64,000 bases of DNA from Bugula neritina. Its lineage: Eukaryota; Animalia; Bryozoa. The notes beneath the pieces were generated by a model, which did no database searches, was not told the DNA's origin, and saw nothing but the letters and a program-made list of their open reading frames with translations. The position numbers were made by a program, and so were the translations under genes. Location of the stretch: NCBI GenBank assembly GCA_964035545.1, contig OZ037770.1:3752662-3816661 (forward strand), in the 5' to 3' direction. This document shows positions 17,768-60,500 of this stretch, piece by piece (within the stretch, counting starts at the first letter, position 1; every line of letters starts with the position of its first letter).

Positions 17768-17832
<65 letters not shown>

Positions 17833-26273: not shown

Positions 26274-26457
26274 CAGTGCACCTTCCATATTTCACGGATC
26301 CCACAGGAAACGAGCAGAGCTTGGACCGCTATTCTGTGGCTTATGTATGTGTGTAATGGGTAAATTCAACAGATTTGCAAGTTGAATCTGGTATTCTATT
26401 ATGTCAGAAATTGAGATTTTGTGACCCGCTGCTCAGTGAGATATGGAGGGAGCACTG
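26274..26457. mobile_element. MITE, same family as 21849-22057
   Basis: TIRs CAGTGCACCTTCCATATTTCAC ... GTGAGATATGGAGGGAGCACTG. Confidence 0.65.
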
Positions 26458-27950: not shown

Positions 27951-28130
27951 AACTGAATGGTTCTATAAGCAGCACGGAGTTGGGAGTGGCTGAATGCAGT
28001 AGTTTCTGTTCTCAAGTTGGGGTTGGAGTTGGGTGTTTCAATAAAGCAATAAACCCCAACTCTAAAGATAATTGTTAACTACTGCACTCCGTCACCCCCA
28101 ACTCAGAGTTGCTTATAGAACCATTCAGTT
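27951..28130. mobile_element. Hairpin MITE with ~50-bp imperfect TIRs
   Basis: AACTGAATGGTTCTATAAGCA...TGCAGTAGTT / AACTACTGCA...TGCTTATAGAACCATTCAGTT. Confidence 0.7.
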
Positions 28131-29601
28131 GCACTAGTTTACTTTGTATACATGATATTGTAAACTGCTTCCCTTAGTCTGTTGCATTTCATGTACAACT
28201 AAGTATTTAGAAATATTAACTAATGGATATGCCACATCTAATCTATGTAGGCGTCAGCTATTCAATATAAATCAATTAATTTATATAACTATACAGTTGT
28301 ATATGCATATTGCTATGTAATCAATAGTAGTAGTGTGAAGTACTGTATATAACAGTGTTGTACTGTGGGTAGTTAACCTATAGTATAATATAATAAGTAT
28401 TTCACATAGTAATATGAACTCTATTTAGTCTAGTGTCTAGCTATGTTCACCTTTCTTCTAATCAATAGTTCACCCACCTTTCCCTCAATAACTATAATTT
28501 GTAACTATAGATTTATTCAATATTGAGGATTTCGAAATTTAAGAGTTGTGTTCTTCTAAAGACAGTTATATTGTAGTTAATCACTATTACACAGAAATTA
28601 GCTGCCTTCACTATTAGAAGGATATTGGTTTTGTCATTTCTTTCATTTTTAAATATTTAATTTTTACTAGTTATAACTTTGTAATTATGTTTTGACTTTT
28701 ATTGACCTTCAGTGTTTCTATATAATATAATGTAATATAATACCATGTTATTATGACCATTATGTCATTATAATTATATATTAAAGAGTTAGTTATATAT
28801 AGTAACATAATCATAGCACACTATCCTATATATCACAGACCAAGGTTACATATTTGCATGTTCTTCACAACTTGGTAGTAAAATACTGCTAATTACAGGC
28901 AATTATTCAGACATTACTTTCACTACTCTTTCCCTGGTAACTATAATTAGCTATTTATTGTTAGTCTCCATCTTAGTGTAAGTAGTGTTTAGCTACTGTA
29001 GGTTATGGGTCTCTGCAGAGTTCAAAACTTCATGTTATTGATTGCTCATATAACAGTTTATTAGTTACATCTCTATTCACACTTCAATAGTTACATCCTT
29101 CTCACATGCTGCCTGCTGCCTTAGCTACTTCTGTCTTCATTTTCTAGCAGCTGCTTAACTTCATGAGATCTGCATCTCACTTTTGCAAAACCTTTGAACT
29201 TTCTCGTCATACTAAAATTTCAAAAAGGAAAAATTTGATTCAGAAACTTCATATCAATTTAAATTACAAACTTTATGTCGATATAAAATGAAAATTTGAT
29301 TTCATTTTGAATTACAAACTAGATTTCAATTTTGAATCAAATTAAAACTTTCACATATAAGCATTGAGCGATAAGTTACACCAGATAAAGAAACTGGTAT
29401 GCCTCAGTTTAAAGAGAATGTTATAGATAGAAACTGGGTCCCTTGTTATACTCAGGTTACCTCTAAACTTGTCAGCTTTGAGCAGTGGACCAACTATTCA
29501 ATTTAGACATTTCCTAATATTCAAAGTGATGAAAGTTATGTAAAATATTCTTTGATGTAGCATGTTGGTGCTATGCATAGGCCTTCCTTATGTAGACACT
29601 T

Positions 29602-29820
29602 ATGTCACTAGTTTACGTTGTGATGTCACTAGTTTATGCTAACATGTCACTAGTTTATGTTGTGATGTCACCAGTTTATGTGGTGATGTCACTAGTTTAT
29701 GTGGTGATGTCACTAGTGTATGTTGTGATACTAGTTCATGTTGTAATGTCACTAGTCTATGTTATCATGTCACTAGTCAATGTGATGATGTCACTAGTGT
29801 ATATATAATGAAGTCACTTG
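29602..29820. repeat. 21-bp tandem repeat (~10 copies, ATGTCACTAGTTTATGTTGTG) just upstream of the last TMTC3 acceptor
   Basis: Direct reading; explains spurious ORF 29602-29808. Confidence 0.9.
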
Positions 29821-32800
29821 TGTTGCAGTGTTTCTCTAAAGTTAAGAGTCTAGAACCCAGTAACATCCAGGGCCAACACAACCTCTGTGTAGTCTATGTG
29901 GAGAAGGGAGAGCTGGACCTAGCCGAATCTTGTCTTGCTGCCATCATGGCTGCCGCCCCCACTGAGCATTACGTTCAGCAGCACCTTGCCGTTGTCAGAC
30001 AGCGTCTGGCAGATAAACTAAGACCTACCTAGTTATTTATTAGTCTATAGGGTAGTTATCTGGAATGTTATTATATTACTCTGTAAATCTACACTCAGTT
30101 ACTTATCAGGAGCATTAATCATGAATCTCATTAATTCTAGAATTTATTTTTGTAAAAACCTATTCTATACTGTTTGCTAGTGCTGAGCTGGTATCGTGGA
30201 TGTCTCAGGATTTATTTTGCTAAGCAGGGTATCATTCTAACTACTTGAATTATGATCTGTACATTCCTACTCTGTGATGAAATAAAATATATTTTGTAAA
30301 TTGACATGTTATCAGTTTTCACATCCTGTGCATGATCTGAATCTACCTCTGATTCATAATCACTGAAGAGGTCAATTTTTGTGAATAATTACCTCTAATA
30401 ATTCCAAACCATATGTTTATGGCTTGTGACTTGAAATTTACTCAAGTTGGACTCTGACATGACTTGTAACTACTTGATGGTCACCCATCCTAATAAATTT
30501 CACAGCATAATAAATTACAGTATAACTTAACACACCTGTAATATAGCAGTGCATTGAACTATAAATGCGATTTAGACTTAATTCTATATACAAACCATCT
30601 AAATTTTAGACTCAGTCTTATATTATATGCTAGTAGCTGTTGGGACTTCACATAAGCTACAAAAGCTTTTCCTTAATGCATTATAGCTTTTCACATATCA
30701 TCTCAGCTATGCCAGCTTTTTCCACAAATATTATAACTACTACACAAAAGCTAACTTTTTTCACTATAGTTTAAAAACCCAGAATTTCTACTTATCCATA
30801 CACTTGCGTCTCAAACTTGCAACTTATAACTTATGATATAACCTTTTTCACATTGCTATTTTCTTTCAGCCTGCAACGATAAATATTTCTATACACTTAA
30901 AACACAACACTGGTAAAGACTTGGTGTTATAATATACACAATTTATACTGAGTATTATATACAAGTTATAGACTTATGAAGAGGAAGCTACAGCTGTTAA
31001 CAACATATTGTCTATACCTCACATTGAGTCAAAATAAAGAAATCGAGGAGGTAACTCCCAAATAGGAAGATATGTAAAATTAGGATCGATATGTAAATGT
31101 AGGAGTTGTACTACTATGTGCCATTAAAAGAAAACTTGCCTTCTCATGATAAAAAGTCAAGAAAAATAAGAACCGCTGCTCGAACAAGTGAGTTGTTGGA
31201 GTGGTTTTGAGACTGACAGATATGATTGTTGTTTTTGGCGCTGTCGCCATCTTTCGGATTTCTAAGATTATTGTATTTTGCAATTGGCCCTCAGCCGTTG
31301 TAATATTGTACTTACTAAAGGAAAATTCTACATTTTTTGTTACTTTTGGTTTTATCGTTCTGTCTTTTTGTCTGAATCGGCTGCGCAGTTAGTTTTTGGT
31401 GTTACAATAATATATTGGTGTAGTGAATATTATTCAATTTGTTCATATTCTATTGTATGTTATTATTAACTTCTCTCTTTGTTTGTGATTGCATCGGTCT
31501 GTGTGCAGAACGTAGTCAATTCTAGTATCTCAAGGTTATTAAAAAGTAATTCCTGTGTTGATACCCATCTGATCTTAAAATAGTAATAGTTTTGGATAAC
31601 ATAAAAATCTGACATTTACATTCGCATAACCGCAGCTGAGCAGTAGTAGACCATGGTATTTTTGGTCTCACTGAACACTTTCCTTTGTCATACTCCGACA
31701 TAATAGTTGTAGTAGATATTAATATAGAGATTTGAACTATACTACTCAGTTTCACTACCCGATCCGACACCGCGGCTACAAACAAACATCTTAACCTTGG
31801 CTTTGCTTTGCGCTACTCTACATCGGCGCGTCATACATTACATCTGGAAGAGCATTAAAATGATAGAGTGGGCCTAAGTGACAACTATAACAATAATTGA
31901 CTCTTCACTTATTGCTACTCATAGCTACATAAGTTGCATCTGTTAGTTAAGTTTTTAGTACGATTTACATATATTGATAATACTCCATTTGAAGTTAAAC
32001 TGTACTCTATTCTACAGTTTCACAGGGTACAACATCAACTTATTAACTTCAACCAAATATATAGAATTTCCTTACTAGTACAGACTGGTATACCTAAAAC
32101 CTTATGTACTGCCAAGGAAAGATAATATCAGAAGTTGCTTTACAATGCAGTTCAACTTACAAGCAAAGGAGACAACTTCCAAAACTAAACAAAGAACTCT
32201 ACGATGAAATGCTATACTTATACCAATCAAACTATAATATCTTCAACCGATTAGAAAATCTTGCAAGAAGTGAGACAACTTTAAACATCTTCAGGACTAA
32301 AGTTTAGTTAAATGAGTTTTAGATATTATATTTACTACTACTATAATAACTATTAGATTATATGGCATAATTTTTATTTTTAAACAATGAAAATTCAACA
32401 ATGAGCTGAAAATAAATGTTATGTAATAACTTAATGTGGTGAATTCCAAAGTACAAATTAGCTACACAGAATTAAAAATGGCTATTAGATTACTCATGCT
32501 AAATATATTATTTATCATGCATTTGGAACTTTGTGAGAAAAGTTCTGTAGTGTTCAGTGATGAGCACATCTTACTAGTTGTGTTCAGTTTTATTATTCAG
32601 TGCAGGTAAGATTTCACACAGCTTCTATATGCTTCTTTATACGTATATACTTCATATTTTATTATGTTAAATTTGTCCTAATAATTATGTTGTTTATGCA
32701 TGTGCAAATAGGTAACTTGACAGATTAATAGATATACATATACAACGGCACTCATTGAAGGGACAGTTACTACTATATATCAGCTTCTTTTTATTTTTCG

Positions 32801-35327
32801 TATTTTAATATGCTGTCATATTGCCTATATAAGAAATGGAAAATATATTTTGTTTAAATATTGTATCACTTTTTGATAAAGCCTGATCTGTTGCTTTTTT
32901 AGGGTTATCTTCTCAAAACAAAGATGCAGACATTCCAGAAGAATCTTCAAAATAGATAACTCAAGCCAGACATTAAAAGATTTTATCATATCCGGAGCAG
33001 AAAATCCACAAAATTCACCTGATAAGAAGAAATATGCGCCTCAACAAGCACATAGAAACTTGGTAAAGAAATTAGATAATGTCAGCCCGGAGATGCTAGA
33101 TGACGCAGAGGAAAAGTTAAAGGTAGCGAAAAACAAATTTAAAGAGTTGGAAGATGATATAAAACTTTTTGGCAACACTTGGGATAACTTATTTAACACA
33201 GATGAAGAGATTGTAGAAGGCTTCACAGATTACTTTGGCTCCTCAAGCTCAAAAGCTGCAAAGAATAAGCTAAACTTTGGAAACTCAAAACAACCAACGG
33301 ATATAGAACCGGTATAAGACTTGAGACGACATCTACAGAGAAGAATGATTTGTTAACTCCACCGCTTGCCATTGAATTTGTATTTGAAAAAGATTGGAGG
33401 CCGTTTAATGTTTCTCCAGGTTCTTCTAACCTACATCAACATCTGCCCGAAGCTTCTCAAGATGTTTGGCCACCATTAGCATCTACCATTCCCTCAGTAG
33501 ACGTAAAAACACATGCACAGAAACATTGGTGGAGAGAGATCAAGGAGACAACAGCAGACAAAAACAAGAACAGCTATTGAGAAAGTCAGCCAAAGACAGA
33601 ATAATGAGACTGCTAACTTGTTCTTCTCTCCGCCCTTTGTCATCATAATCTTGTTCTATTAGTGACATCTGTATATGAATCTATACTGTACTCTCCTCCC
33701 ACTAGAGTTATTCCAGTTAGTTCTCGACCAATGTCTAATTATATGAAACAGCTGAACAAGCTATTTGTCTACTGCAGAAAACATCAACTTTATTATTTAA
33801 CTATATAAAGTATTTATATGTTACCTATCCATATCTTAGCTGTTTCATGTTTTTCTTACTATATATACCTCTATAAGTTTTTAGCTGTAGATAACTGACC
33901 ATATAATATTTGTCTCTAACTATGCTTTTTATGTTTGGAATTATTTGAAAAGTATAGTAATTGCCGAACGTCACCATGATAATTTCAAAATTAAGTAATA
34001 TATAAGCAGTTCTATAACATATATTATAATCACAATTATCAATGGGTACTCTAAAGCAGTGCTGTCCAACAAGCAGCCCCAGACTGAGTGTCACCCCTAG
34101 TCTACAGGCCTTATAGAAAAGAGACAACAATAAGTGTTGCTGAAGATATTTCAAGTTAAATCATAGAAGAAAGCTTTTGGAAAGTTTTATTCCCAAAGTT
34201 ACTACACGCAAAGTCATTACTCTGCTATCTATAACATATACTCATATATGAACATGTGTTCCACTCTTACATGCAAGAGTTCAAGGGCAATAACATTCTC
34301 TGCACGTACGTACCTTACGATTGACTTTTTATTCAATATTTATTCGCTAAACTCTAGTCCTGAAAATCTTTAGAGTTGTCCCACTTTGTTGCAAGATTTT
34401 CTAGCTGGTTCAGGAAATTTTAGTTTGATTTGTATCAATCGAATTTCAATGCAGTATTCTTTGTTTAGTTTTAGAAGTCGTACTTTCAGTTACGAAGGGC
34501 TACTTTCATGTGACATGAGTACTTCAAAAATATTTTATAAGTAATTACATACTTGTTTTGTAATGCTATGTAAACAACTAGAAGCTGTTTTGCACATTCT
34601 ATTGCAATATTTTGGTACTTTATTAGCCTGCTTGAGAGATGAATAACTTGCAGATGTACATAAATAAAATTTGACAGATTTTATAATTGTTATTTTTAGA
34701 TTATAAACTTATTATTCTAGTCACCGGTTACTGAAGTTTAATGTCAACATGCCAATTGGAAATACTATACATTTTTACATCACTGTTATTTTTAGATTGT
34801 GGATCAATTTTTGTTGTCACGAATTACTGAAGTTGAATTCTATAAGACCTTGAAAACCATATAAAAGCAAACATTTTAACATAATATATTTGAATAAAGT
34901 TTATTGATAAAATATGAACAGCAAAGTTTGATATACTAGCAAGCTAATTGATATAGTAATATTGATAACATGGCAGTTAAAACATGTGCTTGAGACTTAA
35001 CCTAGTCAGAACTTAGTGTCACATCAACATAGAAGGAATAATAAACTTGGCTAAATAAAAGGTGTGATATAAGTAGTGGTTGTTAGTGTTTAAAAAGTCA
35101 TAAAATCAACTGTTACAATATATTGATAATAAATATTATAACCTAACATTCTATATACTCTAGGTATAATTAAAATATAGTAGTTAAAAACCTATGCTAG
35201 ATAATATATGGCTGTCAAGTAATAGTAAACGCAAGTCACACAGACTCGCTCTTATATATTTGGAGTCAATAATCTTAAATAGTTAAATAAAGCTTTGTGT
35301 AGCTTCAAATTGGAGTTATGTACTGAG

Positions 35328-37685
35328 TTAGGGGTTGTCCTTTCTGTTAAACCCATCGAAGCCAGGAAAAAGGTAAAGTCTTTTACCATAAGGAAGAGTA
35401 TTCCAGATTACAATCAAATTTCCGTTTCTCTCTGAATCTTCATCTGCATAGAGTTTCTTCACTAGTTTAGTCTGCACCTGTAGAGTAAGTAATGACTAGT
35501 AAGATTGTTTATCAATTCACTGTTATAGCTGAGCCAAGATGTAAATATTGTATCCTACTTGTAACAAATATGAACAGCAAACACTTTGGGAATTGTCTAC
35601 CACCGTCTTATCATATAGCATATAGCAGTACAGTGGCACTAGTTATTAGCAAACTACAAGAACGTATATTGACAAGGAAAAGAAACTATAGAGCTAAAGA
35701 AATTGTAAGAACAAAAGCTACTAGTTAAACTAGAGAAAACTAGGAACGACGTTCTGTTACTAAAAATAGTAGATATCTTTTTTCAAAGGATAAAAGAGTT
35801 CCAACATAAAAATGGACAAAATGATATCATGAGAAATTATATTTTAATTTCTTAAATAAAATTGAAATATCAAAAAAGTTTGTGATTTTTAAACTCACAT
35901 GCTGAAAGAGAGTGTAGAGATCACGGTGACAGGCATGTTTGTAGATTGAAGATACTAGAGCTCTAATCATGGGAGATCCATACTCAGGATGTCTCTTTGA
36001 TGCTAAAATAAAATTGAATGCAGTCAAAATACAGGTCAAGAAAGACCAACTCTAACACGTTTTAGTTTTAGTGGAACATAATTTTAATCTCAAGTTTCTA
36101 GAAAATACTATCCTCATTTTGATGCTGCAATAAAAGTATATGTAGCTCAAATTCTGGTGTAGTCAGAGCAAGTTTAAATTTTTTTTATTTCTGTTTGGTT
36201 TTTAGCATTAGCAAGCAATATGGCTAGTACACGGAAAACCTTACATAACATGGTCAAATTAACTTTGAGAAACAAACTTTTAGATCAACAAAAACTGTAG
36301 CTGCACACCTAACAAACTAATGAATAACTTTCTCCTGCTATACTTACAGCAAACGTTACTCTTTAGAACAAGAAGATCATCTATATCCCGTACAGTTCTA
36401 CACTCTTCTATTCTAGGTTCTGATGGTGAGACTGGTCTAATAGGTCTTATTATGCTGGGTGATTCAGGATATACAATGTCATCATCATCAGGTTCAGGGT
36501 GTGTAGAAGAGACAGCTTCAGTTTCCTCTTCTTGAGCTGCTGCAAGACTTGATCTCTCTGGATTCGCCTCAATGTCTGCTGCAAGGCAAACATTACAAAT
36601 ATCTTAACTTTGTGAGCTGAACAATCTCAAGACACCCAGTTGCTCAAGCATCAAAACTGTGAATCAAGTTAAACTGCATATTGATTAGATGACTGGTCTC
36701 TGACAGAAAGTCTTCACTATTTCAACCATTGAACTAAACGTTCCAGTTTATACTACAAAACAACTACCTCCACTGCTGGCTTCTAGGAAGACAACTTTAG
36801 GTTTTCTCTTCATTCCATCGAAATACAAAGGAGTGAGTAAATCACACAGGTTAGTGAGGTTGACCTTCTTAAGGTCAGTTCCATAGATGCAGTTATCTTC
36901 CCCACCATGAGTCATGACAACCAGCATATGACATCCCAAGTCTTTGTGTATTTCTTTTTTCACCCCAGTCTTCACTGTAGACAGCATTTCCTGAAAGTTT
37001 GAAAATGTGTATATAACCAATGATATAAATTCACTTCACTTTAAGTTGTCAAATGACTGCTATTATAGATTTATGCAGTGCAAACAAAAACTTGTCTCAT
37101 CTATAACCTATCAAAAGACCCAACAGTGAAAAAAACTAACAAGCTCCAGAAAATTTAATGCAGCTTTAGAAAAATTTCAAAAACAATAACCAACATAAAA
37201 AATTCACTTTATTTTAAGTTGTCAAATGACTGTGATTCATGCAATGCAAACAAAACCTTTTCACATGAATCTACCTATCGAAAAACCAAACAGTGAAAAA
37301 AAAACCAACAAGCTCTAGAAATTTTGATGCAGTTGTAGAGAAATTCTAAGAACAATAAAAAAAACATAATTTAATGGATGTAAAAAATAGTTTTATTTTG
37401 TTAAAATATTTTACATGCTTCAAAAATATTTGATTAAAGGACAAAAAACATTATATATGAAAATTTACTTGATGGTCAAATAGTGTTCGCATTACCTTCA
37501 CCATAACAACATACCTCTGCTGTCAGGTCTGTGTGTGTCTCAACATCAAATTTGAGAGATTTCAACATGAGAGACATATTCTCAACATCAGCATCTGAAC
37601 CTTCCCTGCATAAGTCTGGTCTTTCAACAAAGTTCTTGTTGTTTATTATCAGAGCTTTCCCTCTCTCTCTGGTCATACTGAACGC
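35328..37685 (-). CDS. Caspase-fold domain (5 exons: p20, p20, linker, p10, p10) of copy 2
   Basis: RGKALIINN; REGSDAD; VVMTHGG (catalytic His); IYGTD; KPKVVFLEASSG (Cys replaced); DDLLVLKS; SKRHPEYGSPMIRAL; NTLPYGKRLYLFPG. Confidence 0.88.
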
Positions 37686-40600
37686 CTGGATATTAATATA
37701 GTTAGAGTATCACATACAGCAGTGACACACATGAGCCAAAGTTGAGAGTACATAGATAGTGGCATGCTTTCAAAATAAATAGTAATAGTTAATTTAGCTC
37801 TCAAGATGCCATATATGGTGCCTCAAATTTCTAGGTCTGACAAAAAGCAGTAAAGCATTCTCTCAATTGCAAAATCAATTTTACATCTTTATGCTAAAAT
37901 TTAAATTTGTTACATTTTAGTTATAACATGAACTAAGCAAACTCTTGTTTAAGACACCAGTTGTCATTTTTCCAACAAAACATGTAAATAGTCCATTAAG
38001 TATGCTGGTTATTGTTACAAAAGTCATTCAGGATATTATTGAGGTTACAAAATAAGAGTTATTACACTGCATGACTATATGTTGTTGAAAATAGCTTATA
38101 TTTAACTTTAAGTTTTTACAAACCAAGCATGTATTTGCAAGGCTGTAGAATTGAATAAGGACAATTTACGGCTCTAATAAAATTTGTTTGCATATTACAC
38201 TTTACTGGCTCAAAATAGACCAATATCTATTTTATGTAAACAAAGTTTCTAAAACCAAACCATCTGCAAAACATTCACTTAGCTTACAGATACAATCGAT
38301 TGCAGTGGAAAATTATAGTAAAATCAACTTTAAGCTTAAAGGTCACAAAAGAAATCATACTATAAATTGTTTGCCCCACTAAGATTACTCTATGACCATA
38401 TATATATGGAGTTACTGGGAAATCTCAACCCTTCCTCCTAAGCAATTCCTCTGATCTCTTTCTACAATTCCTTCAGCTTTCAGGTTCTCTTAGCCTTTGA
38501 CCTCCTTAGGAGTACTGCTATACTGTTACTATTACTTTTTAATAAAGGTCAAAAGAGCCCACAAAAAATACATTCCCTCTTACTGGAATTCAAATAGTAG
38601 AAGTCTAGCTTTCAGGCGTGCTAGCAAGATAAACATTACACTACAAGGACTAATGAGTAATCTCCACACAACAAATGCCTTCTAATCATGACAACCAATT
38701 GAACCCAAACTAATAAAAACAGAGCAGAAACTATGGCTAAACCAAAACCTACAAGTATAGTAAAATGATAGAATTTGAAAATGTGCATGCATTTAGATCA
38801 ATTGATTTTCAGATCCAATTGAACAACTGCACATGACAATCTAGTAAAAGGAGTTTTTAGAAACCGAAATACTCTACTAGGTGGAGAAAGGAGAGCTGCT
38901 ATTACTTGTGTTCATCAACTAATAAATTCACCTTTTCAGTGTTTGAAAAGAGTTGTTTTATCCTTGAGTTGGTTGTTGGCTTTAGTTCAAGTTGTATTAA
39001 CTTCATGTCTTCCTCATTCTCTTCATCAGGGTACAGATTGTCATCATCTTCAGAGAGATCACTCAGATCATCATCATTTAACTCATCTACAGTCACATCA
39101 TTAGACAGATTATTGTCAACATTTGAAACCATAAACTACATACCTCGCTTAGACAGGAGAAGAAGCAATTAATTTTAAAAGTCACAATCAGATATGATTT
39201 GTAGGGAAATGTAGGGCAAAATTTGCAAAGCCTATAATTTTACCAATACTGCTGGTATAAAAAATGAGCTCTGTCTAAAAAATTCACCATTTGATTTGCT
39301 CTGCTCTCTTCGAACTTTGAGCTCAGAAAGAAAGTTCTTCAATTGATTTGTTTCTGTTTCAGAAAAAGTCTCACCTGAACAATACAGACAGAATTAGTAA
39401 CATCAAAACTAGATGAGAGGCATTAGAAGAATATGAGACATAATCAAAAGCTCATGTATCAAGTTTATATTTTATAAGTCAGCCTAGAAGTTCATTAGAA
39501 TAGCTGTGTAATTTGCTAATGTCCATCTAGCTGCTATTAAAATTCATCAGTGCCTGGAAAAATAGTGGATACGTTTTGATAGTGCAACAAACTATTTAAA
39601 AACATTTGGGCAAAGCAATCAAAAGTGAATCATAGTTGTAAACATACATGGATGAATTAGAGCACTGGGTATCTCTTCATCGTTACACAATATCTTTGAA
39701 GATCCATGACACTTCTTGACATTTGGTGGCAGTTGGTTTTTTAGAGAACGGAAACACCATTTAGGATGCAAAAGCTTTTTAGGGATAGAAACCCCCAGTA
39801 GCATGCAGTGACCACAGATGCAGGCAGTAACTGGTCGACTAGCGGTCCAAGTTACCATGACATGTCTGAGAATGTTGTTTGTGGCTGAAATGAGTTTTTC
39901 CCACATCCTGGAAATGTGAGGACCATCGGATGAAACATAGAGTAAAACTCTTCTAGATTCATAGTCATGTGTCAGCTGCGTGTATGTCTCATCTTGATAG
40001 ACAGTTGCTCCATTTCTCTTCACCTTCATTGTAGCAAACTCTTTAGAAAACAGTTCTAGCAAACCAACTGTCATTTGGTGGTAGACATGCAGCGGTAAAG
40101 CTAGGCCCTTAAACTTTATCTCAGTGTGAAGGACCATATCCTTTGGTGAGGTGTATGACACACCGTGATGTTCCTTAGCGAACTGAGGGATGATGAAGTA
40201 CGGTTCATGGACATCATTTTCCAGAGGGCCAAATAACAAACGGAATGTTCTAAGCAAGCAAATAGCAGTTTCAACATCATGGGAGCTTTTGAATAATGTT
40301 TCCTTTGCGATCAAATATGTTAGAAGAGATTTCATCATCAAGCCTGTTGTTTTGAAGCAATTCACAGACTCTTTAAACTCTTCTGTTTCAATTCTCAACC
40401 CTTCTTCGGAAATGTATGATTGGAAGTGATCAACTCTTTTCTGCCAGATCTCTGGGTCATGATGATACAAGACACATAGTAGTTTGGTAACTTCTGTGAT
40501 CTTGTGAAATATGTATGGTTTGAGTGCATCGATATTTTTATACCAGAGAACTTTACCGCAGTCGTGCATGTATGTGAGAATGGTATCTAGCTGATGTGGC

Positions 40601-43600
40601 TCTACTTCAATGCCTTCTTTTGTCAATTCCAACAGAATCAACCAGAAAGAGCTAAATGCTCCGGTCAAAGACAAAACTTTCTCATTCACTTCTTCCCAGA
40701 TCAATGGCAAAAGCTTAACAAAGTGCTGACTACTTAGAAGAAGCGAGCTCTTTATCATTTCAAACTCAGCATACTGGTCATCCTTTCCAATCTCATAAAC
40801 ATCTCCACTGGCAAAAACCTTTCCATTTGATGAATTGAAATGCTGTATTTTCGAGAAATTTTCATCTGAACTTTTCTCTTCATTGAGAACTTCTTTGCAA
40901 AGCTGTTCAGATATGCTAAGAAAGCTTTCTTTAAGCTGTTGAAACTGTTCACTCTGAAACTTATCCTTGTGTGTGAAGACAAGCTTAGGTGGGCCAAGAG
41001 ACGGATGGGCTAGATAGAGGTGAGACATGAAGTCAAAGGCCAACTTTCTGACAGCCTCTTTCTTTGTAAACTCATTTGAAATCTGGTCATACTGCTCCAT
41101 GTTGACTACAATTACCGGTACACAATTCTGTCTCAGTGTTAAATGGTATGTGATATGGTAGACCTCCTGGCCTCCCATATCTATGAGACGAAGAGTTGTA
41201 TCATCCACCTCCACCTCTTCTACATTGAACACTTTTGTGGTCTCATCATACTCTGCATTCGAACTTCTGTCAGTCAGAACTCTCTTCCTGTCAGTGCTTT
41301 GCAATGTTCGAATTAGACTGGTTTTACCTGCCATGGTGTTCCCCAACACTGCTACTGTAGCAAATGGCAGATTTCTACCAGCACCCTTAGCCAAATCTGT
41401 GTAGTAGTGTCGCACAGCATCTAATCCTCTCCTACAGACTTCTAGTGGAGGAGATGTAAGAGCATTGCAACCATGTATATGCAGTGTATGGAGACGTGTT
41501 AGCTGTAGCATCTCAGGGTTCAAAGATGTCATGGACTCATTGTACAATATATCAAGTGTTTGCAGATTACTCAATGCACACACTGAAGATGGTAGACTGG
41601 TGAACTTATTGTTTGATATGTCTAGTGTCTGCAACTTTTGTAGATTCTGTATCCTAATAATATATTATATATTCACATTATCAGCACATGCTAGAGGTAA
41701 GTGAGATATAATTATAGCTGTCATAAATCTACAATGATAGTAAAACTATTATACACAGAATGTAGATGTATACGACGTGGCAATGGCTAAAGTGACCTTA
41801 TTATATAAAACCCTTTAAAGTAGTATTAGTCTAGAAGTAACCGCCCGAAAAGTGCTCAAAAAATTGGGTTAATACACTTTACTAGGTGGCCACTCAAAAA
41901 AAGTTGTTTCTAGATCAATATTCTGTGTTGATTCTGAATCTACAAACTCTAGAATTCTATCTCTACCCAAACTCAAGTTATTGCAAAAAACAAATCGGCA
42001 TTTTGGATGGGTGATAGAAAAAAATGTGGATTGTGCAAAATAGTATCCAATTTTATCAAGCTATCTTGAAGAAAAAATATTTGTTGAAGTATCAAAAATA
42101 ACTGCCTCTTACTTAGAATTCTATGCTAATACTAAATTTAAAGACTGTAAGAGGCTATCTCAAATTATAACCAAGTTGTTTATATAAACATATATAGTCT
42201 AGAAGTAACCTCCCAAAAAGTGCTCAAAAAGTTGGCTTATTACACTTTACTAAATGGCCACTCAAAAAAAGTTGTTTTTAGATCAAAATTTTGTGCTGAT
42301 TCTGAATCTACAATTTTTAGAATTCTATCTCTACCCAAACTCTAGTTATTGCAAAAAACAAATCGACGTTTTAGATGGGTGATAAAAAGAAATGTAGATT
42401 GTGCAAAATAGTATCCAATTTTATCAAGCTATCTTGAAGAAAAAATATTTGCTGAAATATAAAAAATAATTGCCTCTTACTTAGAATTCTATGCTGATAT
42501 TGAATTTAAAAACTGCAAGACGCTATCTCAAATTAAAAATCAAGTTGTTTATATAAACACATGTGTTTGTTATGAATCGACATATTGCATGCGGCATAAG
42601 CATGCAGAATAATTGTATGACCAAGCTATTTATACAAAAATAAAAGCAAAGTCATGCTGATGTGTGAAAAAACTATATTTATAAAATCATTGTACAAAAT
42701 AAATGTTGAAATGAATAAATATTGAAATATTTTGAGCTCAGCCCAAGTGAACCATTTGCTAGTCTGTCGGTAGCCGTTAAACGTCTGCAAAAATCAACAA
42801 GATTCTGTAAAATTATTTAGAGGAACAGAAGCATGAAAGATTATCAAAATCAAATTGGTTGCAAGCAGCAAAATATATAACAAATGTCTAAAAATAGTGC
42901 TTTATTATAAAAAAGTATTCTCGCCATCATTGTCATTGCCATCAGTCTCATCAGCTCCTTCCCCAATATAGAGCTTCTTTTCAGACAATCCTTACATTGA
43001 CAAACATCAGTGCATGCACTGCATTTGAGATTTCTGACATCCACATCTTGATATGTTGCAGCTGGTCTTACAGGAGCAGTTTAAACTTTGCAATATACAT
43101 GTTCAGGTGCGAAAGCTTGAATCATCTACTTTATATTTATGTTGCCATGATTCTCAACAATCTTTTCATAATGTTCTGGGGTGGTGCATCAATATAAGCT
43201 GTTGTCACTCTTCTTCAAATAGCTGCCTGATAATTTGCTCTTTTTACATGCAAATTTAATTCATCTTTTGTTGGAGGCAAACTCTATTAAGTTATTTTAG
43301 ATGGTGAACGAAATACAGTGTATCATACATTATCTATATATTATATGGATTTCCTGCTCCATAAAGCTTATAGACAAATTGTTCTATTTCAGCCGCTGTA
43401 ATGGCTTACAGCTTAAAATACTTCCCAAGGTGTTCAAAGTTTCCCATACATTATGGATATTTTCTCAAAAAAGAGTAGGCTGTGCGATATCCTTTTTCAT
43501 AAAAAGCACTATAGTCAAATAAAAACCTGTTGAAGCATGAAATCTACTAAGTGCTGCACACAACTACGGTTTGGATTTACTTGCTGCAATGTTGACATCC

Positions 43601-46600
43601 AAATATCTAATATGATTATGGTTTCTTCCCAGATAGACGCTATTTTTATTTTGTTACCATATATATTAATATTACCTATATAACTGAGGAATTGATTGCT
43701 AATATGCTAATAGCTATATGTAGTAATACATTAATAATAGACACTATCTTTAATGAATACTTATTAGCAAAATATATTTTCAAACAACAGACAAGATGTA
43801 TAAAATAATATACAAAATTAATAAGTTAATGCAAATCAAAAGAATTTATTTATGTGTTAAATAACAAGCAATTAATCCAAGTTTATTTAAATATGCATAT
43901 GTTTCAATAATATTAAAATAAGTTGCACATGAAAATACATTTTACCAAAATAAATAACTAGCGTCTAAGTAGAAAATTTAGTCTAGCCTCTTTCTGGCAT
44001 GACACCATGATTACCACACCCGTGAAAAAATATAATTGGTAAGAAGGTGATGTTTTGCAAATAGCGAGACTTAGGATGAAAAGTTGAGATTTGATTATTA
44101 TACGTGAAATTATGATGTTTATAAGATATTTTGCATGTAAAAAAGTTTGTGTATCTGCTCCCTCATGATCTAATTGTAAGCATTTGAGTTGTGCTTTCTT
44201 AGGAATTCTACCATGTTTGGTAAAATTGTAGCTGAAAGCAGTTATTTTTGGTATGCATCAACTATAATAACAATATTGTTCTCTAATATATAATATTTTT
44301 ACTCCATGTTTCACACAAAAATGAACCAGTCTCAAACTCAGCTTATTTTAATTTGGGGATAAGAAATTATTATTTTTGTAACAAATGGCACACATGAAAA
44401 AAGTACATGCCTATGATCTTTGAATGAGGCAGCCCAAGATCATTTTTCTAATGCATGGGTGGTCTAAATATAACCATATAATATATTAAAAATTATAGGA
44501 AAGCTTTAGGGTATTTCTTCTGTAACTATAACTGAGATAAATTGGCTCTAGAGTCATTATATCAAGATAGTATAAAAATATGCATTCTAACCAATAGCAT
44601 TGTTTTAAAAACCAAATTGCTTATGTATAATATATAGTTCAGCTTAAATTTATTGGCAAAGCTCAATTATACATTTTTAAAATATTATCTTCCTGAGTCC
44701 AGATCAACCAGCTCATGCTTCTCATTACTTTTTTGTAAAAGTAGTTATTATAATAAAAATGGTGAAGAAAATCATTATCAGACACAACTTTACTTATAAT
44801 TCGCCTTTTTTATAGCCGATCAATAATAATGTTTGCCTTATAACTAATAAACCCATTCCTTTGCTTGTTTTCGTCCATATAATCCACTTATTTCAGATTT
44901 TTTCACAAGAAAATCACTAGAAATAAACTCAGAGAAGTGAAAAACACATCTATGATTAACTGCAAAAGTTTTTGCTTGTATATAATATAATAAACTAGCT
45001 TCAATAATTTCAAGATAATAAATTAAATATTATTTAATGGATTTGGACAAAGTTGTGGGGAAACAACTCCTGTAACATTTTAAAGAGTTTTGTGACTAAC
45101 CGGGTGGATAGAAAAATTTAAAGTTTTTATAGAAGAAAAGTGAAAAAAGTATCTATAACTATCAGCAAATTTATTTTGCTTATATAAAATAAAATAGCTT
45201 GAATAATTCCGAAATATTTAGCCAATTCACAAAAACATTAGGAGAAAACAACTCCTGATTAATTTTAAAAGTTTAAAGCGTTTTTGTGGCCAACTGGGTG
45301 CACAGAACAGTCTGGAGTTTTCACAGATTAATTAGGACCCTTCAAACTTTGTATTTCTAAAGAAATTGCGTGGCCACCCCTCAAAGTGTAATGAGTGAAA
45401 GATAATTGGAGGTTACTTCTAGACTATATGGGATATAATTGTAATTCTACAATTTTCATTTATTGATATTCTCACAATTTTCAAGTGTTATTTTTGATAT
45501 TTCAAATCATTTACAACACTACAATTACAATGAATTGGTAAAAGATATTAAAAAAGTAATTTAAGTGTCACAATTCATAATGCTTCCGTAGACAATGTTG
45601 TTTTATATAACATGTAGTTGAGTATAACTGCTTAGACTGATATTTTATTAGATATGTGTGGTATATATTATAAATATGTACTATATATAATACAGTTATA
45701 ATCAAACTATATAGAGGCAAAGTTATTATGCATGAGTCTGCATGAAGTATTACAGAAAGTATGCCAGAGAAAAACACAATACTCAGCATTACACTTTAAC
45801 AAACAATGCTAAGAAATACACATTAATAGTTGTTGAACAGAAAGTTCAATTTTTATCAACTTTGCTATATGATGAACTACAAGTTCAGGGTACTATTGCA
45901 CTGTCTTGCAAGGATATTACGTGTGCATTCTTTAAAGGACAGTTTTGTAAATTATAAGGGAAAGCGAATTATTGAACATATTATAGATATGAACAACTTG
46001 TTATGTATATACCATTTCTAGCTTTACAGAGGAGAGGTATGGACACTATAATGTAGTTTAATTGTGTTGACTATTTTGCTAAAAATTGTTTTAAATAGTA
46101 ACTCTATTGTGACACACAAACCTCTCAGGTGGAGTAGATAATTCACACTGCATCATATTCAACTCTTTAAGTGATGTGAGTGATGACACAACTTCTGGTA
46201 CTGTGTTGAGAGGATTGTCTTTTATGTATAGTTTTTCTAACTGAGTTAGCTGACATAGACTATAAACATACAGTGTTTGATATATTTAGTTTCGCCTATT
46301 CAGGATACAATTACTAGAGTTACTATAACTACCACATGATTATGAGGGATAAAAAACTATACTATCAATTTATTCCTTCATAATAGATCTATATAATGTA
46401 ACATACTATCATAACGCTTGACTACTAGGTAAAAGTATAACAGTTTATTATAATAGTACACAAGTATTCATTTTTAAACTCAGTGAATACTACGTAATAA
46501 ACTAGAAATTATTGCTTACTATTAATTACATTTTTATAGCACAACAATATATAATAGCATAAAACCTTAAAATTGCATTATTCCCAAATATTTTAAACCA

Positions 46601-49600
46601 TTGCATATATGTGTGTGTAACTTCAAAACATTGCACATCATATTTTTCAATTATACAATGGCATATACCATAATAACACTTGGTAAGCATATATAAAGTT
46701 GTCAAATAATGAATGTTTTAAACAATACAAAATCTGTGACAAACAAACCTCTTAGGTAGAGTAGATAATTCACAGCCTCCCAAATCCAACACTTTAAGTG
46801 ATGTGAATGATGACACAACTTCTGGTACTGTGTTGAGAAGATTATCTCCTATGTATAGTATCTCTAACTGAGTCAGCTGGCACAGACTGTAATATATAGT
46901 ATATGATATACATGTAGTCTGCATTACTATAATATTCTATACTATATTCACATTTTGTTTTCAACCAGATAAAACTATATACAACTCAACTACCAAGCAA
47001 CTTATTGTAGCATTGTACATGCAGAGCATGAGAAGTTAACAGTTTATTATAATAGTATACAAGTATTCAATTATTATATATACTCAGTGTGTGAATACTA
47101 ATCAACTATACAACTGCTTACTATTATTTACATTTTTATAGCACAAGAATATATTATAATGATATACCTCAAATTATGTTATTTTCACAATATTACAGAC
47201 CATATTTTATATAGAATTAATAAATTGCATTTCACATATTTTTCAATCATATAATGACATAACCTAATTGTACTTGGTGAGGAACTATTTTCTGATTTCA
47301 AGTATTAAATGTTTCAAACAATACAAAAACTGTGACAAACAAACCTCTTAGGGAGAGTAGATAATTCACAGCTACTCATATTCAACTCTTTAAGTGATGT
47401 GAGTGATGACACAACTTCTGGTACTGTGTTGAGAGGATTGTTTCCTATGTATAGTTTCTCTAACTGAGTCAGCTGACACAGACTATAAACATACAGTGTT
47501 TGATATATTTAGTTACACATATTATGCAGAGTACAATTACTAGAGTTACTATAACTAGCACATGATTATGAAGGATAAAAAACTATACTATCAATTTATT
47601 TCTTCATAACAGATCTATATAATGTAACATACTACCATAACGCTTGACTACTAGGTAAAAATATAACAGTTTATTATAATAGTACACAAGTATTTATTTT
47701 TAAACTCAGTGAATACTATAACTAATAAACTAGAAATTATTGCTTACTATTTATTACATTTTCATAGCACAGCAATATATAATGGCATATAACCTTAAAA
47801 TTGTGTTATTCCCACAACATTATAAACTATTGCATATATTATTTGTGTAACTTCAATACATTGCATTTCATATTTTTCAATTATATAATAATTGACATAC
47901 CGTAATAACACTTGGTATAAGCATATAAAGATGTCAATTATTGAAGGTTTCAAACAATAAAAAGAATTAGCAATACAAACCTCTCAGGTAGAGTAGATAA
48001 TTTACAGCCCCCCATTTGCAACTCTTTAAGTAATGTGAATGATGACACAACTTCTGGCACTGTGTTGAGAGGATTATATGCTATGCCTAGCGTCTCTAAC
48101 TGAGTCAGCTGACATAGACTGTAATATAAAGTGTATGATATATATGTAGTCCTCATTACTATAATATTTTATACTATATTCACATTTTGTTTTCAACCAG
48201 GTAAAACTATATACAACTTAGCTACCAAGCATCTTATTGCAGCATTGTACATGCAGAGCATGAGAAGTTAACAGTTTATTATAATAGTATACAAGTATTC
48301 AATTATTATATATACTCAGTGTGTGAATACTAATCAACTCTACAACTGCTTACTATTATTTACATTTTTATAGCACAACAATATATAATGACATACCTTA
48401 AATTACGTTATTTTCACAATATTACAGACCATATTTCATATAGAATTAATAAATTGCATTTCACATGTTTTTCAATCATATAATGACATAACCTAATTAT
48501 ACTTGGTAGGAAACTATTTCATGATTTCAAGTATTAAATGTTTCAAACAATACAAAAACTGTGACAAACAAACCTCTTAGGGAGAGTAGATAATTCACAG
48601 CTACTCATATACAACTCTTTAAGTGATGTGAGTGATGACACAACCTTTGGTACTATCTTGAGAGGATTCCAGCTTATGTCTAGTTTCTCTAACTTAGTCA
48701 GCTTACATAAACTGTAATATAAAGTGTGTAATATATGCATATATTACACACTTTATATTACAGTCTAGACTACATGTAGTCTCTTGTATCATATATTGAC
48801 ATATTCTGTACTCAGCTATAATGTAAAATATGTAGCAAACAATTTTGTTGAGACAGGGTAAGCAGCAAAAAAATGCTATTATGCCATGTTATAGGTGTAA
48901 TGGGTGCCCTGTGTATAATTGAGTGATTAGATGTATATGTATATAGACATCCTGTTTGTTTAATAGATAAGGGCTACTCTACAATGTAATGCTAATATAT
49001 AGTATGATTTATAATAATAAATGGTATAATTTGTTATAGCTAATCTGACACAAATTAGCATGTATTTAATACTCTGAAAATATTTTATTTTTAAGTATAT
49101 GGCTACATATAATATGCTTATATATATTATGTATTGCAAACAAAAACCTTCTGTATAATCCTGCATGTATACATGTACTGCAATAATATTATGTTACTTC
49201 TGTATTCAACTACATAAAACATGTTTTAATTTATGATAAGATGTGTAACACTACAGACAGTTTCCCACTGTCTAGTTTCTACAACTCGTTCAGCTGGTAG
49301 AGATACAATGTTATACATATTACTATAGCTTTATATAGTGCATGATTACATCATGAGTAAGAATAGACTTCAGCATTGACTCAGACACATACATCGTGGG
49401 TGATAATTATCACAACTAAACTCATTTAACATTTACACAGCTATCATAATAGATACTTACTTGTCTAGACTTGCTCTGTCAGTCAGGCCAGAAACACATA
49501 GACACAGGGCTTTACCAGCAACCTCTCCAATGTTGTTTGGAATATTCCCTATCAGTCTAAGATCTGTGATATGATAACTCCCAATTTCATGTTTCACCTC

Positions 49601-50509
49601 AGCAGCAGTATATGATTTGGTATTAGCATACATAGCATACTGTACATCCCACCAGTCTACAGGAGGCTGACCAGAATGTCTGAACCAGATTCTCATATTC
49701 TCTGTAACATCATACAGTGACAGTGTGATTATTACACTGTGCTAGCAGGTGATGTCTGTCATTCTGAAACCTGTTACATACATCTATTATTTGCTGTGTG
49801 TAAGACACTACAGCTATATATAGACATGCCTGGCTACTTTAGGTTCATGAAAGTAAAATCTGCAAATTTAAAATGATCTCTAATTCCCTGAAAACAACTG
49901 CTCTGTGTAAAATCTTTGAAATTATGCTGCTTCGGTTTCAATAAAGACCCTTTTAAATAATGTTGACATATATTATACATTGTATAAATATATAAAGACA
50001 TTTTAAAATCGATGAGTTTAAAGCAGACAAAAACACGCTGAATTATCATTTCACATCCAAGCATGCACAAAAAAGGTACAAATAGCAACATCAAGTTAAA
50101 AGTTTCTATATCCGACACTGCATACTTTCTACCCCATGAGTCACACAGCCAATGTTTACAGGATGATTCTAGAAACACATGGACTAGTATATAGTTAGAA
50201 CACTTTCTGATAGTGAGATATATAGAACTGATTATTTGAATGTTACTCATATTTTTACTATGGAAACAAGCAAACCATAGAAAAGTTTTTGAAAACTCTT
50301 GTCTCAATAGGTAAAACTTTTACTAGTCTTGCTAAAATGAGATTCATACCCATGCAGAGCTGGTTTTGTTCATACCTATATTCAAATAAATGCTAAGTAT
50401 TGTCTAAATACAAATAGTAACAACCAGTAGATAACTTTGGTTGAAAGCAAAACTTGTAACTTGGCTTTTCAACAAAAATTTATTAAAACAACTCACCATC
50501 TGTTGCCAT
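35328..50509 (-). CDS. LRR-Roc-COR-(pseudo)caspase fusion protein, copy 2, apparently intact (15 coding exons, 1356 aa)
   Basis: Exons 50509-50497, 49701-49461, 48711-48574, 48118-47981, 47482-47345, 46886-46749, 46259-46122, 41653-39648, 39374-39288, 39086-38932, 37685-37515, 36990-36768, 36578-36348, 36002-35899, 35477-35328 (TAA). Lengths sum to 4071 nt, every junction is GT-AG and phase-compatible, and I found no internal stop. Confidence 0.85.
39648..41653 (-). CDS. 2006-nt exon: 3 terminal LRRs + Roc GTPase + COR, copy 2
   Basis: ORF 39619-41634 with GNTMAGKTS, DMGGQ, THKD, LTYMHDCGKVLWY and a C-terminal CICGHC. Confidence 0.9.
41827..45426 (-). mobile_element. Degenerate Academ-like DNA transposon (3600 bp) in an intron of copy 2 only
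   Basis: Perfect 16-bp TIRs TAGTCTAGAAGTAACC / GGTTACTTCTAGACTA. 3-bp TSD TAT (41824-41826, 45427-45429); the empty site in copy 1 near 4722-4730 reads GTAGTATGG. Minus-strand remnants ALSRFHASTG, LPPTKDELNLHVKRANYQAAI and NCSCKTSCNISRCGCQK..CTDVCQCKDC resemble the Academ transposase C-terminus. Confidence 0.8.
46122..48711 (-). CDS. Array of five 138-nt LRR exons, copy 2
   Basis: Exons 48711-48574, 48118-47981, 47482-47345, 46886-46749 and 46259-46122 are all phase 2-2 and open. Two of them are missing from the ORF track and were read by hand. Confidence 0.9.
49461..49701 (-). CDS. N-terminal cap exon of the ROCO-caspase gene, copy 2
   Basis: MRIWFRHSGQPP...SLD; donor AA|gtaagt; homologous to 8008-8230. 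Confidence 0.7.
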
Positions 50510-51482: not shown

Positions 51483-54400
51483 AGAGAAGAGATTGTCTTG
51501 AAATGTGTAGAAATAACTTTATTGTAGATAGCCATCTCTAAGAGTTGTATATATCCAGCAAGCTCCAGCTGTAGAATGACTCTAAACACTGCGAGCTTGC
51601 ACGCTTATAAACTCAGGAAACAATCCTTCCAGAAAATTCTACCAATCTTCGACCAAAAATAGGTCATGTCAAGTGTGCCGGAGTCTCCGATAGGATGCTG
51701 ACACTCTGACATGACCAATATTGGTCACGTCAGACATGTCGGAGGTTCGACATGCCTGGTCTCAGACGAAGACCGGTTTACAGCATACGAAATTAAAGTT
51801 GAGAAAAAAGTTAGGCTAAATAATAGTAAAGTTAAAGACAACTCCAAAAATTTCCCGACTCAACCTCCATCGAAAAGTATCTTTTTTTGATAACTAGCAA
51901 AAATGACACACAGTGAAATGAAATGTATACAATAAAATATAATAAAATAACTAAAGTATATACACGTCACAATGCAAAGAAATGAAGTCACACATATATG
52001 TATAATAAAATAAAACCAAATACACAAGCTACTACCAAATTAAATAACAAATTAGGTGAGAATATTGTTCATACATATATACAATAGTACATAGCATTGT
52101 CGCCTCTCTCCATCGGCCGTATAAGCTGAGACACTTGGTCTACATGGGGGGCTACATCTGCTGCCATGGTAGCTTGATGTTTTTTGACTTCTTCCCCAGT
52201 GTTGTTGTTGTTGTTTGCTCGGGCACCGGACTGCCGTTCACCTGAGACAGAGTAGAGGTTGCCCGGCAGGCTAAAAACCCAAGAACAAAAGCTACCTGTT
52301 TGTGGGGTTCCCCACGTGTGGCAAGATCGAGTTGCAGAAGTCGAGGAATAAATGCTGACTGGGTGATGGTCGCTGGAATGTTTTCGTTTTTGGTCTTCCT
52401 AATTTTCGGCCGACAGGCCAGAAACCAAAAAGCAAGAACTGCCTGTTGGTGGGGCTCTCTACATGTGACAAGATTAGCTCCCTGAACTCGGAGAAGATGG
52501 CTTCATCAACCACAAACACCTTGCCCATGTGGCAACAGGCTATGTTCTGGTGGGCAGTATATATTTCTGTTGGTATGAATACTCACCGCATGGTGAAATG
52601 CTGAGGGATCACGTGCAGTCTAAGTCTCCGGTGGATGGAAAACCTCCTTCTACACTACTCACAACACGTTCAGTCAATCCGGAGTCGTGTCTCACTGGTT
52701 GTCCAGTGCTGCTGCGAGGTGGACAGCCTGAGTAGCTTTAAGACCTGACTGTACTCCTCTTTGCCATCAGGTTGGTTAGTGCTAGCTGTCCCACCACCTA
52801 GGATTGTCTGTTCCTTTCCCGCAGACTGTTGCAGGTCTACGGGGTGGAGGACATACTCATCTGCAATGACACGGGGGCTGTAACCATCTGGGAAAAATCT
52901 TTTGGGCTGTTATTAACCATGCAAGGGTTCTGCAAAAAGTAAGATTAAATACGACTTCATCCTGCATCTTCACAATTCATATTTGACTCTAAGAGAGAAG
53001 GCAGAGACCGATTGAGGCCAATCTCATTGTTGCAGAAATTTATCATTTGTTTGTATGGTGCCCTCATACACACAGGTAGCTCAGTCATACCTAGAAAAGT
53101 TGTTAATCCCACCTCCTAATTTAGAAGGTAATCATGAAGAGGCTCCTCTTTGAGTTCTACCAGAGCATCCTCACAGTCCACCAACTCAGTTTCAATTCAA
53201 CTGATTGTTCACTGATTACTGTAAGGCGTGCTAGATTCCAAAGATAGAGGATCTAGCCCAAAAGAAATACCTGGCTGACTAGAGCTGGTGGTTTTTTGAG
53301 TAAATCTCATGCTGTGGCAATAGTCATCAAAAAAACATGTCTGTTCAATGTGGAGTCTTGAGTTGAAATGCCCGAACCGTGTGTTATCAGGTGTTCATCT
53401 GACAACCCTACGATTGCGCACTTTGGACTGATATTTTTCCAGAGCGCTCCACTCAATAAATGTGGTTGGGCAAGACATCCAGCACCCAGTAAGGTCAAAC
53501 GAACTTGAGCTGAAGCTCATCTGACTGTCCACAACACCTAAGATAACTGATCAATCAAACCTCGTCTCCTACTCGTTAGGAAGTCACCCACCATTTACGG
53601 AGGAGACGTCCTCCAAGTCTCCTATCGGCGCCTTCTATTGATTCTCCTGCCAAACTTCATGGGCTGTACTTATCCTCTCTATCAGTTTCTCCATATACGT
53701 ATGTAGTGGGTACTTGAGCACTGGAACATGGTATATCAGATGCGCGGGAACCCTGGTTTCTCTGGCAAGCATCAAAAGGTTCAGGGGCTTCTGTGTGCTA
53801 AAGTGGGGCATGCTGCGGTAGGCCCGCATGATTTGTGGCAGCACCGCATTCAATCCGTTTGACTCCTGCTTAAGTTTAGGCTCATGAGGGCATCACGCGA
53901 TATCCTGTTGTTGAGTTCCACAATTCCGTTCACTTGCAGATGATATAAATTCTTTGCTCCAGTTCACCCCCTTTATCTAGCAGAGGTAACCCATTAGTTG
54001 GGACTGAAACAGGGTACCCTGGTTTGTATGAATATTTTCTGGTAACCTAAAATAACAAAACACATGTAGGTCCAGAGCCTTAGCCATTGTGGGGGCTGAC
54101 GTGTCTTGAATAGCCTGTGCGTCTGCCCACTGGCTGAAGTGGTCTGTGAGAACCAGTACCCAGGTGTTATCTCTGTCAAATAACAGCATAGGACCGACTA
54201 AGTTTACCCCCGATTTTTGCCACAGTCGACAGGCATACAGCTGCGTTAACTAGTGTAGCCAACTGAGGACCTGCTCCATGAGTCATTGGAAAGTTGCCGG
54301 GGCAGCCAATTATCCACATGACAGTACTCTCCAGTTTCACAGCCTATCAATCATGGGCAATGCATGCTGCCTGTTGCGTAGGGTCAGAACAGAGAGGTAT

Positions 54401-60467: not shown

Positions 60468-60485
60468 TGGTGTCAGAAGTGGGAT
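60468..60485 (+). promoter_or_regulatory. Primer binding site, complementary to the tRNA-Leu 3' end
   Basis: TGGTGTCAGAAGTGGGAT lies 2 nt after the LTR's terminal CA and is the complement of ...ATCCCACTTCTGACACCA (metazoan tRNA-Leu). Confidence 0.85.
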
Positions 60486-60500
60486 ACCATAGCTGATAAA

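Follow-up and report, generated by a model that had tools for sequence, protein, structure and literature searches.

A caspase fold with serine in place of the catalytic cysteine in an LRR-Roc-COR-caspase gene of the bryozoan Bugula neritina

We analysed a 64,000-nucleotide stretch of the Bugula neritina genome (GenBank assembly GCA_964035545.1, contig OZ037770.1, forward-strand positions 3,752,662 to 3,816,661; hereafter the window), which carries on its minus strand, at 35328-50509, a gene predicted to combine leucine-rich repeats (LRRs), a Roc GTPase, a COR domain and a caspase fold in one chain. This window gene is real, and so is the large family to which it belongs, of which our searches found no description in animals; its design is already known, and here the design ends in a pseudo-enzyme. 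A first-pass annotation, made from the sequence, had proposed a sensor wired to a caspase effector. That effector claim fails for the window gene, whose nucleophilic Cys is replaced by Ser, and holds only for the 30 of 41 family members read that keep both the catalytic His and Cys.

Gene structure, domains and family

The first-pass annotation had joined scattered reading-frame fragments into one uninterrupted frame of 1356 amino acids. This model holds: 15 minus-strand exons are separated by 14 GT-AG introns with matching phases, and together they give 4071 nt, equal to 1356 codons and a stop. Checked exon by exon, the gene has no stop in the required frame in any exon, and an AATAAA lies at 34905, beyond exon 15. 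The exons, together with a second copy in the window (copy 1), are as follows.

Exon 1, 50497-50509, minus strand: predicted start, with the start codon (MATD); the same exon lies in copy 1 at 9146-9134
Exon 2, 49461-49701, minus strand: 79-aa N-terminal segment, no Pfam family
Exon 3, 48574-48711, minus strand: 138-nt phase 2-2 cassette, two 23-aa LRRs
Exon 4, 47981-48118, minus strand: LRR cassette
Exon 5, 47345-47482, minus strand: LRR cassette
Exon 6, 46749-46886, minus strand: LRR cassette
Exon 7, 46122-46259, minus strand: LRR cassette
Exon 8 (2006 nt), 39648-41653, minus strand: last LRRs, Roc GTPase, COR
Exon 9 (87 nt), 39288-39374, minus strand: first COR-caspase linker exon
Exon 10 (155 nt), 38932-39086, minus strand: acidic linker with a conserved DLSD-type motif, candidate cleavage site
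Exon 11, 37515-37685, minus strand: start of the caspase large subunit; Arg179 equivalent kept (CREGSDAD)
Exon 12, 36768-36990, minus strand: catalytic exon; His kept (36909-36907), Cys replaced by Ser (AGC, 36777-36775), Gln283 equivalent is Glu
Exon 13, 36348-36578, minus strand: acidic intersubunit linker and start of the small subunit
Exon 14, 35899-36002, minus strand: small subunit; likely Arg341 equivalent kept (SKRHPEYGS), assigned by eye
Exon 15, 35328-35477, minus strand: end of the small subunit and stop
Copy 1, 1-9146, minus strand: recent duplicate with four intact LRR cassettes, extending past the window start

Pfam, PDB and fold searches were run exon by exon, and the Pfam order of LRR, Roc, weak COR-A and Peptidase_C14 agrees with the single-chain arrangement originally put forward. 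Roc is recognised by PF08477 at 32.3 bits against a cut-off of 27, and its motifs are intact in exon 8 (P-loop GNTMAGKT at 41343-41320, DMGGQ and THKD). The COR match is weak by Pfam, with a COR-A E-value of 0.013 in the window gene and of 0.01 or less in 52 of 73 relatives. An alignment-based model of exon 8 (predicted local distance difference test score, pLDDT, 91; predicted template modelling score, pTM, 0.88), adopted in place of a discarded single-sequence fold of pLDDT 35, resembles LRRK1, CtRoco of Chlorobium and LRRK2 over LRR-Roc-COR, as well as the RocCOR tandem 3dpu and the isolated COR 3dpt. By this modelled fold the product is a ROCO protein in both defining domains, Roc then COR. 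Caspase large and small subunit sequence is matched by PF00656 on exon 11 (E 2e-10), on exon 12 (E 6e-8) and weakly on exon 14, and the caspase exons match CED-3 and caspase-8 among PDB entries; no DED or CARD match was found in the exons scanned with Pfam. In the Asp pocket, read from the alignment and by eye, the equivalents of Arg179 and Arg341 appear kept, and Gln283 is Glu in the window gene and in most copies on C6 of the assembly. This change of the pocket Gln to Glu in most copies could alter specificity.

Membership of the NLRs was rejected on the basis that the nucleotide domain is a Ras-like Roc, not a NACHT or NB-ARC STAND ATPase; the NLR-like character suggested earlier stands as a parallel of design only. 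The protein is probably cytosolic, as had also been suggested. No strongly hydrophobic stretch was found in the window gene, where the best 19-residue Kyte-Doolittle mean is only 1.59 and lies within COR, and no membrane segment is evident from the sequence.

The LRR cassettes are encoded by 138-nt phase 2-2 exons, five in the window gene and four in copy 1, with two LRRs per exon. Across these nine cassettes from two copies, the proportion of nonsynonymous differences (pN) at predicted concave-face positions is 0.39, compared with 0.065 elsewhere. Hypervariability of the concave face is present; positive selection is not proven.

A scan of the genome (216 Mb in 321 contigs), in which 66 of 160 candidates were scored so that the count is a lower bound, returned at least 66 Roc-COR exons at 60-100% identity. 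All 66 are followed, on the same strand, by a caspase catalytic exon no more than 16 kb away, and in 63 cases no more than 8 kb away. The genome-wide paralogue count, which the first-pass annotation had offered as a check on the fusion, thus came out in its favour. The 38 fetched loci that reach the end of COR all have a phase-1 donor there, at an unchanged position; exon 9 was found in 35 of these and exon 10 in all 38, with in-phase acceptors. The exon-10 donor is other than GTA or GTG in nine loci, and the five of these that were rechecked have GTT donors in phase. An acidic D/E-x-S-D motif lies in exon 10 in 28 of the 39 loci that were scored, and all 11 caspase-bearing models from the bryozoan Watersipora have it as well; it may serve for cleavage that releases the caspase, or else for phosphorylation. 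In loci L013-L052, Roc-COR exons that are close relatives of one another precede caspases of two types: one is about 55-90% like the window gene, and the other, which reads QACSG or HACSG (L022, L033, L043, L047, L050 and L052), about 40%. This pairing of similar Roc-COR exons with two caspase types may reflect swapping of effector modules.

The family is also represented in RNA-like reads. The read layout over the window gene covers 35301-41300, and in two RNA-like runs of one sample the exons are covered and the introns hardly so; a third run covers both. Of the junctions by which the one-chain model was to be checked, two were recovered in family contigs: 39648/39374, the exon 8/9 joint, exactly and in run X2, and 39288/39086 with a shifted acceptor. 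In the latter case run X1 joins exon 9 to an in-frame acceptor at 39047, 39 nt inside exon 10, a joint that would remove the DLSD motif and that may represent an isoform or a paralogue. Joints or loose ends were seen for exons 11/12 and 13/14, and the exon 10/11 joint (38932/37685) was absent among the RNA-like joints listed.

Loss of the catalytic cysteine

The catalytic pentapeptide of the window gene reads EASSG, compared with QACxG in caspases, and the catalytic His is retained. In alignments with PDB entries, this Ser falls opposite the catalytic Cys of CED-3 (8jol) and opposite a Ser in 4m9r. An active caspase was rejected given that Ser breaks the His-Cys dyad. Since the catalytic Cys has been replaced, the window gene is not the death protease that had been proposed, and its caspase fold is, to judge from these residues, most likely catalytically dead and unable to cut.

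Catalytic codons were read in 41 copies of the family. Eight encode Ser by AGC, two encode Ser by TCC, one has Leu in place of His, and the remaining 30 carry both residues. In a tree of exon 12 built without the catalytic codon, a single clade for all Ser copies was rejected (approximately unbiased (AU) test, p=4e-11), and a single clade for the AGC copies was not (p=0.28). By this result there were at least two losses of Cys. A genome-wide pattern search returned the same eight AGC copies, all on C6 and spread over 3.5 Mb; the presence of AGC in eight separate loci argues against an assembly error. The search gave one further near-match, LEVSNG followed by GT at C3:20094291-20094311, which may be an extra independent Cys-to-Ser copy or a chance match. 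Beyond this assembly AGC was not encountered: in a JGI sample of independent origin the closest copy has Cys, and metagenomes scanned with exon 12 yielded a single match that was weak and uninformative.

The Ser copies stay under purifying selection in the caspase exons. For exons 11, 12, 14 and 15, the ratio of nonsynonymous to synonymous divergence (dN/dS) is 0.25-0.29 when AGC copies are compared with each other and 0.30 for Cys copies; AGC copies differ from one another by a dS of up to about 0.29. The window gene itself has no lesion and retains all Roc motifs.

Related architectures, the duplicate copy and the remainder of the window

The architecture has close counterparts in bacteria, where proteins that combine LRRs, an AP-GTPase (Roc), COR and an effector are predicted counter-invader systems (Kaur et al. 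2021, PMC8195603). Caspase is one of at least 24 C-terminal effectors in these systems, which have fast-changing LRRs and several paralogues per genome (PMC8195603). They share with the window gene the order of N-terminal variable LRRs, Roc-COR and a C-terminal effector. The bacterial systems are however intronless, carry many effector types and are predictions only, whereas the bryozoan family is spliced, has at least 66 copies and carries one effector type. In addition, a quarter of the bryozoan copies read are inactive.

Among animals, four RefSeq models from Watersipora subatra (XP_067947674.1, XP_067948342.1, XP_067935178.1 and XP_067941065.1) have the order LRR-Roc-COR-caspase and are named 'MFHAS1 homolog' or 'uncharacterized'; the first two are full chains. 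Mapping of XP_067947674.1 to its genome shows the large COR exon again, followed by two small linker exons that include an 81-nt counterpart of exon 9. The Watersipora Roc-COR sequences are about 31-35% identical to the window gene where scored and fall in one clade with it, but in contrast to the window gene all 11 caspase-bearing models read keep both His and Cys (QACSG or QACGG). In amphioxus, Branchiostoma belcheri XP_019627981.1 and XP_019617954.1 have a caspase after Roc-COR, the former with LRRs, and these fusions have a canonical QACRG and lack the acidic linker motif. In a quick Roc-COR tree, which also bears on descent from the bacterial systems and in which several comparison proteins are unnamed and P0204 is badly cut, the bryozoan Rocos group together on a long branch without any starred sister group, and XP_019627981.1 nests apart from this clade among amphioxus MFHAS1-like Rocos. 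Given this position, the amphioxus Roc-COR-caspase is probably a separate fusion.

Other ROCO proteins share less with the window gene. LRRK1, LRRK2, DAPK1, MFHAS1 and CtRoco have in common with it the fold of the LRR-Roc-COR core at about 14% identity; the window gene has no kinase, WD40 or death domain and instead carries a caspase fold after COR. Brown algal LRR-ROCO proteins form an expanded family with selected sites on the concave face and are proposed immune receptors (PMC11378527, PMC3341825). Symmetric LRR cassette exons and concave-face variation are common to them and the window gene, although the algal genes have one LRR per 72-nt exon and the window gene two per 138-nt exon. A few of the algal proteins have a C-terminal peptidase domain, and caspase is not mentioned in the 2024 paper on this family (PMC11378527). 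For the pseudo-enzyme, the nearest parallel is c-FLIP-L, a caspase fold without catalytic residues that exists alongside active paralogues, as the window gene does. c-FLIP is recruited by tandem DEDs and has no sensor or GTPase, whereas the window gene has no DED match.

Our literature searches, with subscription papers mostly outside their reach, found no account in animals of the LRR-Roc-COR-caspase architecture or of such pseudo-caspases. The novelty suggested by the first-pass annotation survives as the lack of an animal paper among those searched, and is lower than first thought because the architecture has been predicted in bacteria (PMC8195603) and occurs, unnamed, in the Watersipora and Branchiostoma models.

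Copy 1 belongs to a recent duplication in which window positions 1-18782 correspond to 36919-60174, with introns 80-96% identical. Its COR exon has an in-frame premature TAG at 2755-2753 where the window gene has TGG, and its catalytic codon, read in locus L016, is also Ser. Conservation of the linker exons in copy 1 had been offered as support for the gene structure. The lengths of 87 and 155 nt and the AG/GT ends are indeed the same, but this is weak support, because a recent duplicate would keep the eight splice-site bases by chance with a probability of about 0.3-0.4. As a recent segmental duplicate with a premature stop, copy 1 was rejected as independent evidence for these exons. Between the copies, exon 2 (49461-49701, and 8008-8230 in copy 1) is 91% identical, compared with 95-99% in its flanks, with an 18-nt length difference and 17 amino-acid-changing versus 3 silent differences; it possibly encodes a fast-evolving N-terminal cap, which has no Pfam match. 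Absent from copy 1 is a decayed DNA transposon that occupies 41827-45426 in intron 7 of the window gene. It has terminal inverted repeats of 19-22 nt, a 3-nt duplication (ATA) on either side, one 368-nt end that is present twice (41827-42193 and 42195-42562) and a broken Cys-rich transposase-like frame near 42900-43500.

Elsewhere in the window, a GC-rich stretch (42-48%) lies upstream of both copies, at 10000-16500 and 51500-57500, duplicated at 97% identity. It holds many short open frames, two of which were tested with no clear Pfam match, and is probably a mobile element. Between the two copies lies a probable unrelated gene (21000-33600, plus strand) with a weak tetratricopeptide repeat match at 29643-30029 and coiled-coil-like matches at 32880-33314, and at 20812-21637 there is a tandem array of about 11 copies of a 76-nt unit at 98% identity. 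A Ty3/gypsy-type retrotransposon at 60402-64000 on the plus strand, with a gag-like frame and an open pol frame (protease, reverse transcriptase, RNase H, integrase), is cut by the window end.

Proposed function and alternative explanations

Apical caspases are activated by dimerisation (PMC11121540). CtRoco, the bacterial Roco studied in most detail, is dimeric without nucleotide or with GDP bound, and monomeric once GTP is bound (PMC5714945). Given the monomeric state of CtRoco with GTP, GTP-driven dimerisation that activates the caspase cannot be assumed, and the 'on' state could be either. In the model we propose, the concave face of the LRRs would bind a microbial or non-self ligand, which would shift the nucleotide state of Roc and the monomer-dimer balance of COR and so bring caspase domains into proximity. 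In Cys-bearing paralogues the caspase domains would meet and self-cleave in the acidic linkers, with death or defence as the outcome. The product of the window gene would instead use COR and the dimer face of its caspase fold to join a catalytic paralogue; it would bring its own specificity for a ligand to the pair and make the partner more or less active, as c-FLIP-L does for caspase-8. That it acts in such heterodimers is, by this analogy, a proposition for which we see about even chances. The immune role of the family is likewise putative. We put forward tentatively, and with more doubt than belief, the wider reading that bryozoans have an adaptor-free immune network, in which catalytic and repeatedly inactivated Roco-caspases pair via COR and link many sensors to a GTP-gated death protease. 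Its form, which we hold with the same reserve, would be that of a sensor/helper or activator/inhibitor network with a GTPase instead of a STAND ATPase.

Several points weigh against this account. The RNA-like contigs are mostly 90-99% alike and no read is shown to come from the window gene, so that they speak for expression of the family only. On the concave face, the proportion of synonymous differences (pS) is also raised, to 0.34 compared with 0.095 elsewhere, giving a concave pN/pS of only about 1.2. Other lesions are present in three or four of the ten Ser copies versus two of the 30 Cys copies (Fisher p=0.09), gene conversion among tandem copies could lower dN/dS without function, and the pairwise dN/dS values are non-independent. 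Finally, the comparison with c-FLIP is an analogy only, because the caspases here have no CARD or DED.

The lesions bear on the possibility that the Ser copies are debris of birth-and-death evolution, tolerated losses that are becoming pseudogenes with no role of their own. Copy 1 has its premature stop, L020 has three stops, L035 has an interrupted Roc exon, the GC-AT donor after exon 14 is poor in L013 and L035, and a single base change suffices to turn TGC into AGC or TCC. Yet the window gene is intact, both independent changes give Ser, which preserves the fold, and eight AGC copies persist over 3.5 Mb of C6 with dS near 0.29 and a dN/dS equal to that of Cys copies; we regard this explanation as unlikely. 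The same constraint tells against a decoy or scaffold, in which the dead fold would attract caspase inhibitors or proteases of pathogens, or would trap substrates and offer a docking surface that signals with no catalytic partner. A decoy surface should evolve faster, yet the caspase exons are as constrained as those of active copies, and no downstream signalling domain remains in the chain. Such a role, likened to the integrated domain of a plant NLR, would fit the classic substrate-trap change of Cys to Ser, the retained His and both pocket Arg equivalents, and the acidic linker motif present in most Ser copies; we nevertheless consider it quite improbable.

We give little credence to a non-immune function, in which the family would serve programmed tissue removal (larval metamorphosis, polypide regression) or respond to an internal cue, with the window gene as a developmental brake. 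Bryozoans routinely regress their polypides, family transcripts are found in unchallenged samples, and ROCO proteins serve in many processes other than immunity (PMC4104024). At least 66 clustered copies, a variable number of cassettes and concave-face hypervariability nonetheless fit receptors for pathogens or non-self, as in brown algal ROCOs (PMC11378527). Least credible of all is that two neighbouring genes have been joined, with transcripts that end after COR and caspase exons transcribed apart, even though the 38932/37685 junction is missing from the listed joints and several models from Watersipora have no caspase part. No stop codon precedes the donor of exon 8, intron 8 contains no poly(A) signal, the COR-end donor is kept in 38 of 38 loci, and the E8/E9 and E9/E10 joints occur in RNA-like runs; full-length RefSeq models exist, one of which, mapped to its genome, has both linker exons.

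If the family works as proposed, it would be a class of animal innate-immune or death receptor in which an LRRK2-type Roc-COR switch replaces NACHT or NB-ARC and no adaptor is needed. It would provide a candidate receptor repertoire for bryozoans, whose immunity is little studied, and a natural one-chain reporter of the 'on' nucleotide state of Roco proteins, an open question for LRRK2-like proteins. That a catalytic residue was lost repeatedly while selection continued suggests regulators built into the family, which would parallel c-FLIP but have evolved separately.

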